Positions 12,212 through 43,785 of a DNA stretch of 64,000 bases are shown here, piece by piece. The position numbers and the translations under genes are program-made. The notes below the pieces were generated by a model, which worked only from the letters and a program-made list of their open reading frames with translations, was not told the origin of the DNA and did not search any database. This DNA comes from Eutreptiella sp. 'Long Island Sound 2002' (lineage: Eukaryota; Protista; Euglenida): assembly GCA_964036045.1 (NCBI GenBank), contig OZ038378.1, positions 170,252,001-170,316,000 of the forward strand. The letters are read 5' to 3'. Position 1 is the stretch's first letter. Each line of letters opens with the position of its first letter.

Positions 12212-15200
12212 CTACGTCTGCGGGAAGCATTCCTGCGAACAGAACGGCACGCCGTCCTTGTGGAAGAAGGCCCCGGCGATCTTCAGGTGGCATTTGCCGC
12301 ACCGGAAGCAGTCGGGGTGCCACTTCCTCCCCAGCGCCGTTATCACCCGCCCACTGCTCTTCTTTTCTCCGCACGTGGACCCGTCGGGGGTGAGGACGGT
12401 GCCATCGGCGCGCAGGATGCCGCCGTCAGGGAGCAGCACCGTGCCGTCCATCAACGCGTACGAACCGTCGGGGCGCCGTTTGGCGAACGTGCCATCCGGC
12501 AGCACGAGCCGGCCATCCGGCAGCTTGACAGAGCCGTCGGGCATCAACGTGGTGCCGTCCGGCCGCAGGATCACGCCGTTGGGCAGCTTCTGCGACCCGT
12601 CCGCCATGCGCACCGTCCCGGACGGCAGCGCCCCCGCCCCGAAGCAGGGGAGATTGTACCCCGGGGGCGTGTAGCCCGGAGGGGCGACCGACCCGTCGGG
12701 CAACAGGACCGTCCCGTTGGCCTTCTGCACCGCCCCGTCCGGCCTCAGGATGTCCCCGTTGGGCAGTTTGATGTCCCCGTTGGGCAGCAGGAAGGTGCCG
12801 TCGGACAAGGCGTGGGATCCGTCCGCCATGGGCTCTGCGAAGGTGCCGTCCTGCCGCTTCAGGCGTCCGTCGGGAAGCTTCACAGAGCCGTCGGGCATCT
12901 TCATGGAACCGTCCGGCAGCAGGACCATTCCGTTGGGCAGTTGCAGGGAACCGTCCGGGAGCTGCTTGGCCCCCTCTGGGACCCGATTGCGCCGCGCGAA
13001 GCCCGGCAGGTGATACACCGGGGGTTTGTAGGACGCGGGCATGACGGTGCCGTCCGGGAGGCGGTAGGTGCCGTCCGGCAGCTTCACGGTCCCGTCCGGC
13101 AACAGCAACTCCCCGTTGGCCTTCTTGATCGTGCCGTCTGGCAACAGGGCGGTGCCGTCGGTCAGTTTGTACGACCCGTCCGCTTCAGGGCTGACAAACG
13201 TGCCATCGGGTCGCATCAACCGGCCGTCCGGCAGTTTCATGGACCCGTCGGGCATCGTCATCTTCCCGTCGGGCTGCAGCATCATTCCGTTCGGCAGACA
13301 TTTGACGCCGTTCTCCAGGGTCACCGTGCCTTTGGGCAGATTTGGCTCCCCGAAGCAGGGCAGGTTATAGGTCGGCAGCTTGTGCCCGGGAGGTGCAGTG
13401 GTGCCGTCCGGCAGAATGATCTTCCCGTCCGGCTCGATGATGGACCCGTCGGGGGTCAAGATCTGGCCGCTCCGCAGCCTCATATTTCCGTTGGGGAGCA
13501 GCGTGCTGCCGTCCGACAGGACGTAGCTGCCGTCCGCCAACGGGGAGGCAAAGGTGCCGTCCGGCAGCTGCAATCGTCCATCGGGATACTTCACGCTGCC
13601 ATCCGGCATCAGCAAAGTCCCGTCGGGTCGAAGAACCATCCCATTGGGCAGCCTTTGCGACCCGTCCTCCAGCCTCTTGGCGCCCGGGGGGAGGGTTTTG
13701 CCAAACCCGGGCAGGTCGTACTCCGGCACCGTGTAGCCCGGCCGTGCCAGGGTGCCATCGGGAAGTTGGACCCGGCCATTGGGCAAGATCGTGCTGCCAT
13801 CGGGCGTCAGGATGCTGCCATCGGGCAGCTTGAGGTTGCCATTCGGCATCAGCACTGTGCCGTCCGACAAGACGTGGGTCCCGTCCGGGAGAGCCTTCGC
13901 AAAGCTGCCATCCGGCAACTGCACGCGACCGTCAGGCAACTTCAAGGACCCATCGGGCAGCTCTACGGATCCGTCCGGCATGATGGTCATGCCGTTTGGT
14001 AGCACGATCGATCCATCGGGCTTGCGCACGGAGTTCTCGGGGACCTTGTTTGCCGTGAAGCCTGGGATCTTGTACTCCGGGACTTTGAAGCCAGGGGGCG
14101 CCACTGTGCCATCCTGGAGGCAGACCGTGCCATCCGGCGACTTCATACTGCCGTCAGGGTACAGGATCGCCCCGTTGGGCAGCACCACCGCTCCGTTGGG
14201 CAGCAGCACCGACCCATCAGACAAGGTGTAGGATCCGTCGGCCATCGGAGTCGCAAACGTACCGTCCGGCAACCTCAAGCGACCGTCCGGGAGCTTGACC
14301 GATCCCTCCAGCATGCGAATGGACCCGTCAGGGTTGATGATCATGCCGTTGGGCAGCATCGTGGAGCCATCCCGGAACTTCTCAGAGCCCGGGGGGAGTT
14401 CTGCCTCGTCAAAGCACGGCAAGACGTACTGAGGGATTGGGGTGCCGGGCGGCTTGATGGAGCCATCCGGGAGTCGAACAGAACCGTCCGGCATCTGCAC
14501 AGAGCCGTCGGGGTGCTTGATGCGCCCGTCGGAGTACTTGATGCAGCCGTTGGGCAGCAACACGGTGCCATCGGACAGCATGTACGACCCGTCGGTCATG
14601 GGCTTGGCCCAGGTCCCGTCCGGCAGCTGCACCCTTCCATCCGGATACTTCACAGACCCGTCCGGCAGGAGCATCGTGCCGTCATTCCGGAGGGTCATTC
14701 CATTCGGCAACTTCTTGCTTCCGTCGGGTAGCGTCCCGGTCCCCGGAGGAAGTACGCCAGGCGTCATTCCGGGGACGTTGTACTTGGGCAACTTGTGGCC
14801 CATTTTGGGTTTCCCGTTGGGCATGATCACGGAGCCGTCTGGCAGCTTTATAGTCCCGTCGAGAGTCAAGACATTGCCGTTGGGCAACTTCACGTCACCG
14901 TTGGGGTACAGGACGCTGCCATCGGACAGCGTGTGCGTGCCGTCGGCGTTGGGGGGCGTCACAGATCCATCGGGCCGCAGCAGCTGGCCGCCAGCCATTC
15001 TCATGGAGCCGTCCGGCAGCTTCACCGACCCATCGGGGTACACGTGCATCCCGTTGGGCAGTCTGATGGCGCCATCCGGCAGTCGAACAGAGCCGGGGGG
15101 GAAGCCTGGAATGGGCCGGTTGTCATTCCCGAAGGTCGGCACCACGTAATCCTTGGCAATCGCGGTGCCTCGGGGTATGCGCGTGCCATCCCGCAGTTGC

Positions 15201-18200
15201 ATGCTGCCGTCCGGAGCGATGACGGTCCCGTCGGGCAGCACTGTGTGGCCATCAGGTTTGCGGAGGCTTCCATCGGGCAAGAGCACATCCCCCGAAGGCA
15301 AGGCCGCGCTCTGGTCGCGCTCGCCAAGGACGGCGCACGTCCCGTCCGGCAGCTGGACGTTCCCGTCCCGAAGGTGAACGGACCCATCGGGCAGCTGCGC
15401 AAGCCCGTCCACTCTGACGGTCATGCCATTGGGGAGCTCGTGTGTCCCGTCGGCCTCCGGGACGCTGCCTTCCGGGAGCTTCCACCCACGGAAACCCGGC
15501 ATCTTGTAATGCGGGACGGGGCTGCCGGCAGGTTTCGCAGTCCCGTCCGACGCCCTCATGGATCTGTCGGGCGCCACCACACTGCCATCCGGCAGCAACA
15601 CGCTGCCGCCCAGGAGCCGCACCCGTGCATCGGGCAGCAACAGCGCTCCATTCTTCAACACCACCGCGCCGTCTTCGGCGGGGTCCATGACGGTGCCGTC
15701 CGGAGCCTTGACTCGTCCGTCCGGCGACCGCAGGGACCCATCCGGCAGAATCACTGTCCCGTCGGGTTGTACAATCATCCCGTTGGGGTATTTCTTGGAG
15801 CCGTCCGGCAAGTCCTGTACGCCGGGGACATCCGACGACATGACAATGCCGTTCGGGTAGAGCACCGTCCCGCCGGGCATGGGCACAGTCCCGTCCGCAT
15901 TGGGGGTGGCGAACGTGCCGTCCGGAAGCTGCACACGCCCGTCCGGCAGCTTCACGCAGCCGTTGGGCAGCAGGACAGTGCCGTCCGGCATCTGAAGGTA
16001 TCCGTTGGGGCACAGCACCGTCCCGTCCGGCATGGCCACGGTGCCGTCCGCAGATGGACTGGCAAGGCTGCCATCCGGCAGCCGCACACGCCCGTTCGGC
16101 AGTTTCACAGCGCCATTCGGCAGCAATATGCTTCCGTCGGGCTGCCTGAGTGTGCCGTTGGGCAGTAACACGGATCCGTCAGGCATCGCCACACTGCCGT
16201 CCGCTTTGGGCTCCAGCAATGTGCCGTCCGGCAGCCGCACGCAACCGTCCGGTTGCTTAACGGCTCCGTTGGGCAACTGAATGGAACCGTCGGAGTTGAC
16301 CACCATCCCACGACCCGCAGGCCTCTCCCCAAATCCGGGCACACTCAGCTCCGGCAGTGTAAAGCCTGGCTCCTTCGTAGTCCCATCTCTCAGCCGCACA
16401 GTGCCATCCGGCAGGATGCAGCGCCCATCGGGTCGAAGGATGGTGCCGTCGGGGAGCTGGACGTTGCCGTTCTGGTACAGTACCGTCCCGTCGGGCATCG
16501 GTATACTTCCGTCCGCATTGGGGGTGGCGAACGTGCCATCCGGCAGTTGTAGACGACCATCGGGCAGCTTCACAGCGCCATTGGGCAGCCGAACAGAGCC
16601 GTCCGGTAGCACCACCATCCCATTGGCCAGGCGGGCACTGCCATCGGGCATGGTCTGCCCCCCAGGAGGAAGCTGCTGGCCCGTGGTCCCGCTGGTGATC
16701 GTTCCGTCCAAATACATGATGTCTCCGTTGGGGAAGTGCACGTCGCCGTTGGCAGTGAGCTTGGCCCCTCCCGGAACTGCGTATGAGCCATCCGCCGATT
16801 TCTCAATGACGATGCCGTCCGGAGCGATCATGGTCCCGTCAGGCATCAGGCGGCACCCGTTGGGCAGCGCAATCACGCCGTCCGGCAGCACAACCATCCC
16901 ATTTGGCAGCGTCGTGGTCCCGTCGGGCGCCACCTCCGCGCCCTGCGGCAGCGCCTGCCCAAAAACGGTGGCCTTCTGCGGGTCAAAGCCGGGGATCTGG
17001 TATGCCGGCGCTTCGGCCCCAGGCGGCAGCACCGTCCCGTCCGGCTTCACGATCTGCCCGTCTTTCTTGACGACGGTGCCGTCCGGCAGAAGGATGTCCT
17101 TGTTGGCCGTCACGATCCGCCCGTCGGGCAGCAGCACCGAACCGTCCGTCAGCTGCACACCCCCCGCGGCGTTGGGCTTCAGGACGTTCCTGTCCTTGTC
17201 CACCACGACCCCATCCGCACGCTTCACGCTGCCGTCCGGAAGCAACACGGACCCATCAGGCCGTACAACCATCCCGTTGGGCAACCGCGTGGAGCCGTCC
17301 GCAAGCTGCTCGGAGCCCGCGACGGTGGCGATGCGGCCAGGCAAGCGATTCGTGCGACTGTCGGTGAAGCCGGGGACGTTGAGCTCCGGCAGCTGGAAAT
17401 CCGCTGGCTTGACCGTCCCGTCCCGCAGCTGGATCGTGCCGTCCGGCAAGACGCAGTGCCCGTCGGGCCGCAGGACTGTCCCGTCGGGCAGCCGCATGTT
17501 CCCGTTGGGGTGGAGGACGGTGCCGTCGGGCATGGCGATGTTGCCGTCGGCATCGGGCGTCGCGTACGTGCCGTCGGGCAGCCGCACGCGCCCATCCGGG
17601 AGCTTGACGGCCCCGTTGGGCAACTGAACGGAGCCGTCCGGCATCACCACCATCCCGTTGGCCAAACGCGCGCTGCCGTCGGGGTTGACCTGGGCCCCGG
17701 GCGGCAGCGTCTGCCCGGTTTTGGCCACGGTGATGGAGCCATCCAAATGGATGACATCCCCGTTCGGTAAATGCACTTCCCCGTCCTTGGTCAACCTGCC
17801 CCCTCCGGGCAGGGCGTAGCTGCCGTCTGCGTCAGGCTCAATGATGGTTCCATCAGGCGTGATCATCAGCCCGTCGTCAGGCATGATCTTGGCCCCGTTC
17901 GGCAACGTAATGATGCCGTCCGGCCGCAGGACCATGCCGTTGGGGAGGGTGGTCGTCCCGTCCGGCGCGACGTTAGTGCCTTCGGGCAGGGGTTGGTTGA
18001 AGATCGTCGCGTTGCCGGGGTGGAAGCTGTGGATGTTCATGCTGGACCCATCGGTGAAGATCAGGTCCCCGCTGGGCAGCAGAATCGACCCATCCGACAA
18101 ACGAATGGTGCCATCCCTTTCCTTGATCGCCCCGCTGGTGTCGATGATTCTGCCATCGGGCAACTGGATGGAGCCATCATCCAATCTCGTGCTGCCTGCA

Positions 18201-18327
18201 AGGCTGAGGAGCGGCAGCAGATCAGCGTCTGTGCACGGCACAGTGATATCCATTTGCACCTCGAACTCCGTCCAACGAGGGGTTGACATGGAGTAGAAGC
18301 CGTCAGCTTCCCGAAGTGCCGTCTCCT
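12212..18327 (-). CDS. Exon 2 of a giant P[DN]G-repeat protein with C-terminal LIM domain (~2,138 aa in total)
   Basis: Uninterrupted 2025-aa ORF with an LP[DN]G[ST]-type motif about every 7 residues. The C-terminal CGEKK..ALGRKWHPDCFRCGKC...DGVPFCSQEC is a LIM zinc finger (12215-12373). The frame stays open up to a cccttcccttgtgctccag acceptor (exon starts 18327, phase 1). Confidence 0.93.
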
Positions 18328-18439
18328 CTGGAGCACAAGGGAAGGGATGGCCACGGGAAAGGGGGGCCGCACGTCGTTCGTCAACACATTCACAGCATGC
18401 ACGGTGTCCTGACCCTTGCGGACTGTGGCATGCACATTG

Positions 18440-19100
18440 CGCACCTCATGTGCCTTGCACATCGCATCCGTGAACCTTACACCACATACCCCTGCATCTT
18501 GCACACCATACCCCTGCATCTTGCATCCATACACCTGCACGGTGTATCACACATACTTCACCCATGCACCTTGCAAACTGTACCATGTGCCTTCCGTCTC
18601 ATTCACCAAAGATTGCTATCAAAGGGAACCGCAGCTGTCAACGCCACCGGTACATTTCCCGCGTTTCTTATTTGCACAAGATAGTGCATGGGCAAATGTA
18701 CAAGAATCGACAATTTCGTCATGACAAAATTTTGCATCTTTTTCGGTCCAAAAAGCCCATTTTTTTTGGTTTTTCGGAACTTTCGGCGGGCCAAAATGGG
18801 TCACAAAGAGTTCAAAATACCATACCCATAAATCTTGCATCTATACACATGCACCATGCATACCATACCCACGCGTGCACGCTGTGCGCTGTACCATGTG
18901 CCTAACATGCCCATAAAACTTCCAAACCATACCCGGGTGCTGTGCATATCACACCGATGTACCTTGTATGCTGTACCATGTGCCTTCCGCGCCATAACTA
19001 TATTTCTTGCATACCCCAGGAATATCTGGACCTGTGCACCATGTATGCCGCACCATATGCCTTCCATACCATACCCGGATATCTTTACCATACCAATGTA
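18440..19100. repeat. Intronic repeats (TGTACCATGTGCCT x4; CATACC/CACCATA units) within the 805-nt intron 18328-19132
   Basis: TGTACCATGTGCCT recurs near 18579, 18890, 18972 and (variant) ~19035. Confidence 0.65.
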
Positions 19101-19132
19101 GTATGCAGGCCAGACCCATCCATCTCTCATAC

Positions 19133-19433
19133 CAGAAATCAAATCCGCCGTGATCCCTGTCCCCGTAACCCACTCTGCCCGCAGCTTTCGAAGCGTCAAG
19201 ATCTGCATGTCCCTGCTGAAGGGCTCCAGCGTCCAAAGGGCCCTCATGCCGTCCAGAATGGTATTGTCGCCATGCAACTGTGCTCGGACGTTGACGGACG
19301 TCGCCCACGAGACGCGGAGCGTTTGCGCTGTGCCCGTTTCATTTGTGGCCGTATACGATGCGCCGGCATTGGGCAGATCAGTTTGCGCGATGAAGATCCC
19401 TGAAGGAGGCGACACCTCTAATCGACTGGGCAT
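19133..19433 (-). CDS. Exon 1 of the P[DN]G-repeat/LIM gene (N-terminal beta-sandwich-like domain)
   Basis: MPSRLEVSPP...TADLIS is 100 codons + 1 nt, followed by the donor G|gtatga. Phase 1 matches the 18327 acceptor, and 301+6116 nt = 2139 codons with no stop. Confidence 0.78.
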
Positions 19434-26391: not shown

Positions 26392-28225
26392 TCAATGCAT
26401 GCATACGGATAGGCTAGGTAAGAGGACATGCACATGGGACAAGGTGAGAGTTTTTGAGGGTTTGTGGTGATATGGTACCATAGTGCAACAACCAGGTCTC
26501 CAAAAGTACCCGGGGGGTAACTTGGCGCCACCGGCTCCGATTTTGGTGCTACCTAGGTCAAAAGTTGCGGAAAGGTGTCTACTTTTCGAAAAGCTATAGC
26601 CGGTTGGGTCCGTTTGACCCTCGTTTTGAGCTATTGGGCCGCCATTGGTGGGGGGTCACTCCAAAAATTGAGTTTTTTTACCAGTTTTCAAACACAGGTT
26701 CTTAAAAGTACCCGGGGGGTAACTTGGCGCCACCGGCTCCGATTTTGGTGCTACCTAGGTCAAAAGTTGCGGAAAACACTATACTTTTCAAAAAACTATG
26801 GCTCAAAGGGTCCGTTTGACCAACATTTTGAGTTAGACAACCGACTTGGGTGGGGGGTAACTCCAAAAATTGAGCAACCCTACCCCTACTTTTGGGGAGA
26901 TGGGTGTTGCACTGTGGTACCGCGGATGCCGTGCGCATGGAGGTCAATGCATTTAACAGACGATGGAGACACTCATTCAACTGTGTGCCGGAGTAGTGCT
27001 GCGGAAATAGGCAATCGGGATGGTTGTCAAGCAGTTTTGCTACCTCTGCACGCACCTTGCTGTTGACATGATAGCCGAATGTTTTTTTCCAAAGCGAAAC
27101 ACGTTCCCTTACATTGTCCGGTTCGGACTCATCAAACGTTTGGGTTCTACTGGTTTCCGAGCGTACATGGTTCTTGTCTCCTGTTCCACGAAAACACATT
27201 CCGAATGCCTTGGCAGCGGTGGCCGACCCTTTTTTCTTTTTAGAGATCTCACGGACGACCCGTTGAATGGCATGGAACAAGTCCAGGCACAAGTGTGCAT
27301 CGGGGAAGTATTTTTGCCACACTAAGACCTCTCCACAACATCTATCCGAGTGAACTTCCTCAACGAACATGTTCGGCCGTTGAGATAGCTCTTCAAGAAG
27401 GTCAGATGGGATGGAGGCATCCTCTAGGAATCTCCAAGCCAAAACCATGCCAAGCTCATTCAACACAAAGTATGCACTCTCAAAAAGCTTCTCAAAGTGA
27501 TGGTCTATTTTGACCGTACACTTTTTTGCTATTTTGAATGTGTGGTCAGCTGACAATTTGTGTGCCCCCAGTGACTTGAGGCAAGCATCATAAGGGGCAC
27601 CCCAATCACTGAATGGAAAATAAACATCAGCATGAAAAACAACTTCATTGTATCTCCCCTCGTACAACGAAGCCATTTGCTCTGCCGTGGCACTCATGCT
27701 TACACCCTTAGAGAGGCCAGTTAAAACAAGTCGAAGCACTTGCTTATGCAAGGCACTTCGTTGGAATAATATAAAGGGAAAGGCTCTTTGTAACTTGGGA
27801 GTCAATTGGCTATGAATTTCCCAAGAATGGTACGTTTTACCACAACCTACTAATACGGCCTTAACTTGGTGCCTACATGCATACCCTCGCATAAGAAGAA
27901 TGCAGTTTTCTTCTAAAAGGCATGCAACCCTCCTATGCCACTTGTGAACACGCAAAGGTTGTCCACAGGCAGCACAAAAGAGATGCACTTTGTATTGTGT
28001 CAATGGGTCCCACACAAAAAAGGCAGGACTCCCATTGGCACATGTTGTTACCATTCTTCCCCACAAACTTTGGGTGTTCTTGATCACACCCATTTCGTAA
28101 CTGGTGAAGTAGGGTGGGTCCTTTTTGGATCCACCTTTGGCTCCCCGTACTTCTGGTGACATCCATAGCCATATGTAGAATAGCAGCAATAGTTGCATTT
28201 TCATCATGCCTGAAAAATGATGCAT
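26392..28225 (-). mobile_element. DDE transposase with D-x2-H motif (Mutator-like clan; DUF6729-like family from memory), interrupted near its 3' end by a MITE
   Basis: WDPL..C..C zinc-finger-like N-terminus; LSADHTFK (D1), YFVLNELG, HSDRCC (D2), LDLFHAIQR (D-x2-H) and SGTQLNECLH (E). The ORF-track C-terminus after ..TASAV is read from the MITE and is an artefact. Confidence 0.75.
26481..26914. mobile_element. hAT-like MITE (434 bp) with an internal ~200-bp tandem duplication
   Basis: Imperfect ~25-bp TIR TAGTGCAACAACC.. / ..GGGTGTTGCACTG; 8-bp TSD TGGTACCA (26473-26480) / TGGTACCG (26915-26922). The block AAAAGTACCCGGGGGGTAACTTGGCGCC...GCGGAAA occurs at ~26502 and ~26704. Confidence 0.85.
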
Positions 28226-42369: not shown

Positions 42370-43785
42370 TTATGGAGTGGTGCAGTGAGAACACATGGTG
42401 CTGCAGGACAGTGTGGAGGCGTCGTCAGACATGCGTGACGCTGGCGATGTGTGCCTTGATGAGGTGTGGGAGGACGGCATGCTTTCGGTGTCTGCCTGGC
42501 TTGGTCCCTGCTCCCAGTCCATTTCAACCAGCTGCAGTTCTGCCAACAGATTTGCTGCTACACGTGGCGACATGGGTGATGGTGGTTGGGGGGTGCGAAA
42601 TGTATTTCTGCGTTCCAGCGCCTCCCACGGTGTGTGCATGCAGTGCACTGTGCTCGGTGTGGCCAATGAGGTGTGAGGGAGGCGGGCTCGGAGGTTGGAG
42701 AGTGGCGTGTAGGCGACGGTGTGTGGTGTGAATCTCTTCGGGTATTTGGGGTTTCTGGCCGGGGTGCAATCTTCAATGTCCTGTGACGGTGTCGGTCGGC
42801 GAGGGGTTCTGGGGGGGGGTGGGGGGGTGCTGTACTCTTCCGCTGTGTGCCGCAGTGGTGTGAGCTGCGACTCTGGGAGGGGGGGCTCGTCAAGCTCTGG
42901 GGCCTCTTCCTCCAGTAGGTCCGCTAAGGATTGTACATCATCATTGTCTGGTGGCTGTTGTTGCCCTGTTTGCGAGACGGAGACGTGTCCAAAAAGGAGG
43001 GGGGATTTTCGCCGACCGACATCCGCCAGATGATCCGCTCTGGTATTGCCTTTGATTCCTATGTGGGAGGGGATGTGCATCCAGTGGGTGGGGGAGTGTG
43101 CTGATTCAATTAGGTCCAGTACCTGGGTCCACAGGTCCACGTGGCTGACTGGGCCCGCGGATCCTGTCCACTTGTGCCTGCGCCACTTTTGGGCCTTGCC
43201 GTGGACACCGTCTACAACGAGTAAGGAGTCAGGGCAGATCAGGACAGGTTTGTCTGGTGACCGTGCTTGCAGCGCGCGCAGGGCTGCCCTCAGTTCCCCT
43301 CTGTTGTTGGTTTGGGGTTCACTCACTGGAATTGGTTCAGCTGTATCCCTGGAATCCCCAAAGGAGACGCCATACCCTCCCACTCGTCCTACTACCTCAT
43401 GGTCCTCCGATGATCCGTCGGGATATATGACTTCCCACGGGGGGGGGGGGGGTACAAGCTTATGCTGTTTGGACAACAAACTCATGATGTCCTCCGTCTG
43501 GTGTGAAGGGCTGTGGTTGCAGTACTGAGCTTCTTGCGGTTGGAGTACTGTAGCCACTTTGGAGGGCACCTGATGGGGGCCTGCTGTCTCCATATGTGAC
43601 TGATGACAGGTCCAAAGGGAGGGGGGGGGCATTTGCCTGTGGGGCTGGAGGGAGTACTCTTCCAATTGTCTTGGGGCATTCTGCGGTTCAGGTTGTAGGC
43701 ATTCAGTCGGCTGCAGACAAATGACCTCTGTGGAATGCCTAACCTGCAACCCCCAGCATGTGCCACGCTGTTCTGATCGCCCCAT
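42370..43785 (-). mobile_element. Non-LTR retrotransposon 3' region encoding an RNase HI-like domain plus a Ser/Pro/Thr-rich tail
   Basis: IYPDGS (D), TNNRGEL (E), CPDSLLV (D) and HIGIKGNTRADHLA (H..D) at ~43430-42990. Upstream sequence to ~44450 is frameshifted; no intact RT. Confidence 0.8.

Follow-up and report, generated by a model that had tools for sequence, protein, structure and literature searches.

The G-box (TCP domain) of the centriolar protein CPAP/SAS-4 (PF07202; 4BXP/4BXR/4LD1) is a domain in which PDG or PNG turns link consecutive antiparallel strands. It has been described as a single sheet of 17 strands, about 75 x 23 Å, which assembles head-to-tail into fibrils and has been proposed to act as a molecular ruler (PMC3824074); it also binds a Pro-rich peptide of STIL (PMC3776556). 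A DG-turn repeat is also catalogued in Pfam as DUF6799 (PF20606), an uncharacterised family, and tandem arrays of LIM domains are carried by paxillin, FHL and PINCH. Here, I describe a gene that bears likeness to each of these, located on the minus strand of a 64,000-nt stretch (hereafter, the window) of the genome of the euglenid Eutreptiella sp. 'Long Island Sound 2002' (GenBank assembly GCA_964036045.1, contig OZ038378.1, positions 170,252,001 to 170,316,000). Its product of 2,138 aa consists of an orphan N-terminal domain, a very long array of heptads and the remnant of a LIM domain. The reading favoured here, with a probability of roughly 0.6, is that of a real and probably still functional, shortened paralogue in a euglenid family of giant intracellular scaffold proteins, which would serve as a beta-ribbon spacer or tether with two docking ends.

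The minus-strand open frame 12212-18289 is intact and spans 2,025 codons. Joining the upstream exon to it across the 19133/18327 junction, as in the two-exon model of the earlier note, yields according to an in-house script an uninterrupted frame of 2,138 codons with one stop, the terminal one, so that the model holds (Table 1). Exon 1 measures 301 nt from the ATG at 19433 and ends in ...TCTG/gtatgag, and the acceptor of exon 2 reads ...ctccag/AGGAG. The joined product was used for the frame check and for motif counts, while searches were run exon by exon or on a contiguous paralogue. That paralogue, named A below, is uninterrupted at the site of intron 1 (W19438-19135 corresponds to A7155-7458 and W18330-18026 to A7458-7804, where W and A denote positions in the window and in paralogue A); its homology with the window begins 5 nt upstream of the window ATG, and its mRNA 36 nt upstream of the same ATG. 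Exon 1 shares 82% identity with the N-termini of the two copies on contig C3 and 73% with that of the copy on contig C9. The GT-AG junction, for which RNA evidence had been sought, is supported by this alignment, since paralogue A lacks the window intron, being contiguous there, and its mRNA from a public transcriptome is spliced.

As to the repeat, the product contains 204 [DN]G dipeptides where its composition would lead one to expect about 37, and 142 of them occur as P[DN]G. Successive [DN]G dipeptides lie exactly seven residues apart in 154 of 203 cases, with the heptad consensus [ST]-[VI]-x-L-P-[DN]-G, in agreement with the L-P-[DN]-G-type repeat every seven residues or so that had been noticed earlier. 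Residues 1041-2084 are arranged into nine modules of 117-122 aa, each made of 13 repeat units and a Pro-rich linker: six heptads are followed by the nine-residue TFAxPxADG, by six more heptads and by the linker PPGxxxPxYxLP[GC]F. Within a module the heptads are position-specific, the second being always LPNGM and the fifth or sixth LPDGR. About 890 aa of less regular heptads precede the nine modules. In the DNA, only short 21-nt runs matching at 60-85% can be detected, so that the repeats must be old.

The array belongs to DUF6799, the Pfam model of which matches it in 19 stretches with 391.6 bits (E 5.7e-120; gathering cut-off 26.8 bits). In a HMMER scan of 1.84 billion representative sequences, 2,727 proteins were retrieved at E <=1e-3, and the same repeat, present in thousands of proteins, is found in bacteria, algae, Paulinella, a snail and other euglenids. 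Its fusion partners in eukaryotes are LIM (euglenids), PDZ, C2, EF-hand (Chlorokybus), SH3 and Dpy-30 (snail), and in bacteria SLH, Big and Listeria-Bacteroides repeats. To the strong match of the DG-turn repeat, the euglenid proteins add a fixed 13-heptad module of about 118 aa with its Pro-rich linker, the orphan N-terminal domain and the LIM array. The protein had been presented as undescribed; this still applies to the architecture, for which no characterised family was found in databases or in the literature library, but not to the repeat, already catalogued as DUF6799. No paper mentioning DUF6799 or such repeats was found in that searchable library. Other Pfam cross-matches (DUF5999, T2SSN, SGL and others) were rejected as lattice matches to the DG heptad rather than domains.

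A search of the organism's own genome (2.28 Gb) located two close copies on contig C3, paralogue A at 157.73 Mb and paralogue B at 160.75 Mb. Both are 89-90% identical to the window copy, about 3,050 aa long, and carry five complete LIM domains (186 bits). A further copy, on C9, is distributed over many exons across about 64 kb. The PF20606 family search of the same genome returned nothing and missed the window gene as well, this route being therefore insensitive. Intron 1 is shared by the window and B but not by A, and in the C9 copy the interruption lies about five codons downstream. The second intron of A and B is missing in the window together with some 1.1 kb of the coding sequence next to it (W18026/18035 joins A7804 to A11245), and it is owing to this loss that the window array sits in one 6.1-kb exon. 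The four genomic copies thus offer a neat case of intron gain or loss and of in-frame domain deletion among young paralogues.

Paralogue A is represented by a 9,018-nt contig of a Joint Genome Institute (JGI) transcriptome (L035; 3300017334, Ga0186375_100028), 99.4-100% identical to it. The 2,343-nt GT-AG intron of paralogue A has been removed from this contig, which codes for 3,053 aa, so that one close paralogue at the least undergoes transcription and splicing. At the 5' end of this contig, three non-genomic bases, TTC, stand before a genome-matching G and might be the tail of a spliced leader. Frame shifts and a difference in repeat number between contig and genome, confined to low-complexity stretches, are probably assembly errors.

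The family extends to other euglenids. A transcript of the phagotrophic Chasmostoma nieuportense encodes one such module, six LIM domains and the same C-terminal sequence, and in a transcript of Euglena mutabilis the LIM array is 77% identical. The same module of about 118 aa recurs in three database proteins (P0039, P0001 and P0178), among them a metagenomic, PDZ-ended relative (P0001, 45% identical), and it is shared by a Eutreptiella relative of only about 56% identity. Set beside the 77% of E. mutabilis, this lower figure would agree with a Euglena as the source of the window. In Eutreptiella gymnastica (A0A7S1IPC8, P0178) the 118-aa modules are followed by about ten copies of A(L/I)DxADGxxDGK(F/Y)xG, a motif with no Pfam match. 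The full plan of the euglenid family is an orphan N-terminal domain of about 150 aa, a long DUF6799-type array in modules of about 118 aa and five or six C-terminal LIM domains.

The N-terminal domain of about 150 aa is 73-84% identical among the four genomic copies. In Pfam searches at E up to 10, the 165-aa domain of paralogue A had no match and window exon 1 had one at chance level (E 0.27), and a search of the ESM Atlas together with a word-indexed protein search found for residues 1-165 only this genome's own copies. AlphaFold2, run on the four-copy alignment, gave an unusable model, with a predicted local distance difference test score (pLDDT) of 36.6. The beta-sandwich that had been assigned to this end of the protein is not borne out by these results.

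At the opposite end, the window lacks A17288-18499, an in-frame loss of 1,212 bp (404 codons). Gone with it are some 1.3 modules, LIM1-4 and the beginning of LIM5 with one Cys of its first zinc knuckle. What is left has the pattern C-x17-H-x2-C-x2-C-x2-C-x16-C-x3-C, with seven of the eight zinc ligands of C-x2-C-x16-23-H-x2-C-x2-C-x2-C-x16-21-C-x2-3-(C/H/D). When compared with the intact last LIM of the paralogues, of Chasmostoma and of E. mutabilis, the first knuckle of the window copy retains a single Cys (STCGEKK, as against HTCASCGEK in the paralogues), the other seven ligand positions being kept. The remnant is recognised by PF00412 over positions 3-54 of 58, with 33.7 bits when the whole protein is scored and 41.3 bits for its C-terminal 62 aa (cut-off 22.9), and its closest solved relatives are a LIM of paxillin (E 7e-11) and ABLIM3. 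The LIM domain reported in the earlier note is thus real, but the anchor that it was taken to be is a remnant, LIM1-4 and one Cys having been deleted. The paralogues and Chasmostoma carry five to six tandem LIMs, like paxillin, FHL and PINCH; unlike the paxillin, PINCH and ABLIM arrays, the window protein has one LIM with seven of eight ligands, and it is devoid of LD motifs, PDZ and actin-binding domains. With the N-terminal domain and the modules of about 118 aa present and the five- or six-LIM array missing, the window copy is, by comparison with its paralogues, a derived and shortened member of the family.

The array nevertheless bears the mark of constraint. Between the window copy and paralogue A, the rates of non-synonymous (dN) and synonymous (dS) substitution are 0.055 and 0.28, a ratio of 0.20, over 1,652-1,834 well-aligned codons. 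If the C9 copy serves as outgroup, the single-base changes assigned to the window branch alone are 30 synonymous and 9 non-synonymous in 507 codons. These figures indicate that purifying selection continues to act on the repeat array, and the low ratio together with the synonymous excess on the window branch therefore supports a function.

A structure was predicted by AlphaFold2 for three modules (aa 1388-1766, window 13331-14467), from a 32-row alignment in which modules, paralogues and database relatives were combined. The model has a mean pLDDT of 78.3, with 80-90 in the modules and about 40-65 in the linkers, and DSSP assigns to it one strand per heptad, at heptad positions 2-3 and in strict register (EE-----). 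The array is thus predicted to be ordered and beta rather than disordered, as had been anticipated in the earlier note, for which disorder would have been the adverse outcome.

Among solved structures, the CPAP G-box is the nearest. Foldseek ranked 4BXR first (E 2.8e-9, probability 1.0), with template modelling (TM) scores of 0.07-0.15 for the CPAP matches, followed by designed propellers, Rhs, OspA and MORN proteins, all TM-scores falling within 0.07-0.16. VIA-align, applied to the Foldseek matches, gave Z <=3.6, with Z 2.9-3.6 and a root-mean-square deviation of 7-18 Å for the CPAP G-box. At the sequence level, CPAP G-box chains are the sole non-LIM matches in the PDB at E <0.01 (phmmer, 4BXQ, E 3.4e-5), and a profile search recovers the G-box at E 7e-4. 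In the HMMER alignment, however, a two-residue gap is needed in every heptad, because the unit of the G-box has nine residues and that of the window seven; Tcp10_C (PF07202) scores 29.7 bits, under its cut-off of 36, and no stretch passes alone. The G-box likeness invoked earlier is therefore to be retained as a local, nearest-neighbour relationship without identity of period; the similarity of the overall fold is weak. The unit of about nine residues typical of the G-box ([FY]PDGxxxxx), with strands running across a sheet of about 23 Å, is not that of the window protein; furthermore, the G-box is one domain of 17 strands, as compared with about 200 strands distributed in modules, and the window protein has neither the coiled coil nor the tubulin-binding regions. 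OspA, MORN and Rhs/YD proteins, which are single-layer hairpin sheets like the G-box, share a local hairpin-meander geometry, but they have much longer units (about 20-23 aa) and longer strands, and no sequence relationship to the window repeat was detected. In the snail Biomphalaria glabrata, LOC106080154 (P0185) combines a Dpy-30 motif, DUF6799 heptads and a Tcp10_C score of 35.4 against the cut-off of 36. This combination is a hint of a gradual passage between the heptad and the G-box repeats, with some members perhaps associated with the axoneme.

Several points weigh against a functional spacer or tether. Compared with its paralogues, the window copy has suffered two large in-frame losses and its LIM is one zinc ligand short. 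No window-specific transcript or peptide was retrieved, the metagenome_contigs scan with a 30-mer over the deletion junction being blank, as was its positive control (a 22-mer also present in the transcript known for paralogue A), so that both blanks are uninformative. As for the fold, the predicted TM score (pTM) is only 0.49, leaving the module-to-module geometry unfixed by the model, the DSSP strands are just two residues long, and no global match to a solved structure emerged, with Z <=4.3 across 48,161 PDB representatives (VIA-align). The losses would be easily accommodated if the window copy were a decaying duplicate, unexpressed or functionless, the frame of which is not yet broken: 404 C-terminal codons are gone, and with them four LIMs and a zinc ligand of the remaining one, as are the coding sequence and intron near the N-terminus, and the uninformative scans leave it without a transcript. 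Such decay is regarded as unlikely, since the 6.4-kb frame has stayed intact at a dS of 0.28 from the paralogue, both deletions are in frame, and the substitution ratio and the window-branch counts given above are those of a constrained sequence. A more radical alternative denies the gene altogether and takes it for a translated 21-bp satellite, open by chance. Many 21-bp satellites of this genome are indeed open in several frames and match the query, and long open reading frames (ORFs) also occur on the opposite strand of the array; yet the DNA units are diverged, unlike those of the true 21-bp satellites, the modules have position-specific heptads, the synonymous excess is strong, a paralogue yields spliced mRNA and orthologous transcripts exist in other euglenids, by which this alternative is effectively refuted.

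The remaining alternatives accept the protein and question its shape or its location. Three chains might intertwine into a triple-stranded beta-helix fibre, like the membrane-piercing spikes of phages and type VI secretion systems (T6SS; PF21930, 3PQH), which share short-period strand-turn repeats and a weak partial structural alignment (Z 3.5 over 48 residues) with the window array. PF21930, the beta-helical trimerisation domain of the phage phi92 spike, sums to 47.9 bits against a cut-off of 27, VIA aligns half-modules (model residues 25-72) to the phi92 spike, the PhiTE baseplate and VgrG with Z 2.3-3.5, and an obligate trimer would be invisible to monomer prediction. However, no PF21930 stretch passes alone, the Z values are at noise level, and the AlphaFold2 monomer pairs its strands within the chain at pLDDT 80-90. 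Contrary to one continuous spike, the array is modular, with position-specific heptads and Pro-rich linkers that break it every 118 aa, so that a trimeric helix seems quite improbable. It is very doubtful, too, that the protein is an extracellular or surface fibre of adhesin type, as the bacterial DUF6799 proteins would suggest through their SLH, Big and Listeria-Bacteroides repeats, typical of cell surfaces. The partner domains of the eukaryotic relatives (LIM, PDZ, C2, EF-hand, SH3, Dpy-30) are cytosolic, LIM zinc fingers require a reducing compartment, and the N-terminus shows by eye no hydrophobic, signal-peptide-like segment (no predictor was run). A cytosolic location is favoured on account of these partner domains and of this N-terminus.

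Returning to the intracellular scaffold, each heptad would contribute one very short beta-strand and one L-P-D/N-G-S/T turn, and thirteen such strands would pair within the chain to form a narrow antiparallel ribbon, namely one module, the Pro-rich linkers PPGxxxPxYxLPGF stringing the modules like beads. At about 4.4-4.8 Å per strand, a module of 13 strands would extend over some 5.5-6 nm and the entire set of about 200 strands over some 90-100 nm, by analogy with the G-box and in either one layer or a folded two-layer form. With both ends, the orphan head and the LIM array, docking to partners, the protein would be a long spacer or tether. Of the C-terminal docking end, the window copy has kept a single LIM, one ligand short, which may define a variant with weakened or lost anchoring at the LIM end.

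A location in the pellicle or the flagellum is speculation. In the same vein, a broader proposal may be advanced, tentatively and as rather doubtful: the 7-residue PDG heptad might be a minimal unit, so far unrecognised, from which very long beta-ribbon rods are built inside the cell, and which would be related to the G-box but with shorter strands. Euglenid versions of 100-150 nm, with their LIM arrays and orphan head, might then be rulers or elastic tethers in a periodic cytoskeleton (pellicle strips, microtubule corset or flagellar apparatus), the LIM-less window copy modulating anchoring. Were the structural prediction to hold, no hairpin repeat known to build an ordered protein would have a shorter period than the DUF6799 heptad, and the euglenid proteins, with about 200-290 strands per chain, would be the longest DUF6799 arrays. 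It would likewise provide a structure and a first functional handle for a Pfam family with thousands of unstudied members, and extend the single-sheet ruler idea of the centriolar G-box. A giant LIM-tipped protein conserved from Chasmostoma to Euglena is, moreover, a candidate for the unidentified long linkers of pellicle and cytoskeleton.

Table 1. Coordinates of the gene and of its parts in the window (W, window position; A, paralogue A position)
Feature	Position	Strand	Remarks
Exon 1	19133..19433	minus	100 codons + 1 nt; beginning of the orphan N-terminal domain
Intron 1	18328..19132	minus	GT...AG, 805 nt; paralogue A contiguous here, paralogue B with a homologous, longer intron
Exon 2	12212..18327	minus	6,116 nt with the stop codon at 12212-12214; remainder of the N-terminal domain, entire heptad array, LIM remnant
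N-terminal domain, second part (to about aa 150)	18179..18327	minus	Aligned with the paralogues
Less regular PDG-heptad array, aa 151-1040	15509..18178	minus	DUF6799 stretches; three linker motifs; sub-repeats of 51 aa and about 213 aa
Nine modules of 117-122 aa	12377..15508	minus	Last module shortened by the deletion
Module starts	15508, 15148, 14782, 14428, 14074, 13720, 13369, 13015, 12658	minus	
Junction of the in-frame 1,212-bp deletion	12376..12378	minus	W12377 = A17287, W12378 = A18498
LIM remnant	12215..12376	minus	PF00412 match, 7/8 zinc ligands

In the own-genome search, apparent paralogues at C23:31.63M, C17:21.37M, C15:28.5M, C27:3.66M, C11:18.18M, C1:180.36M and C18:44.12M were rejected as 21-bp satellites open in several frames. 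These satellites are multi-kilobase, and some are open in all six frames (e.g., with DGGWRVT or RPDGQKV repeated); in six-frame searches, any DG-heptad protein will draw them as false paralogues. The long ORFs opposite the array strand are a by-product of the GC-rich repeat. Intron 1 contains a 22-bp tandem repeat at 18485-18539 (2.5 copies, 91% match) and abounds in GGTATG/GCA(C/T)ATGG-like motifs. Elsewhere in the window, two flanking minus-strand ORFs are remains of transposable elements, one at 42373-43785 with an RNase H match (E 6e-23) and the other at 26705-28225 with a DUF6729 match (E 1e-8).

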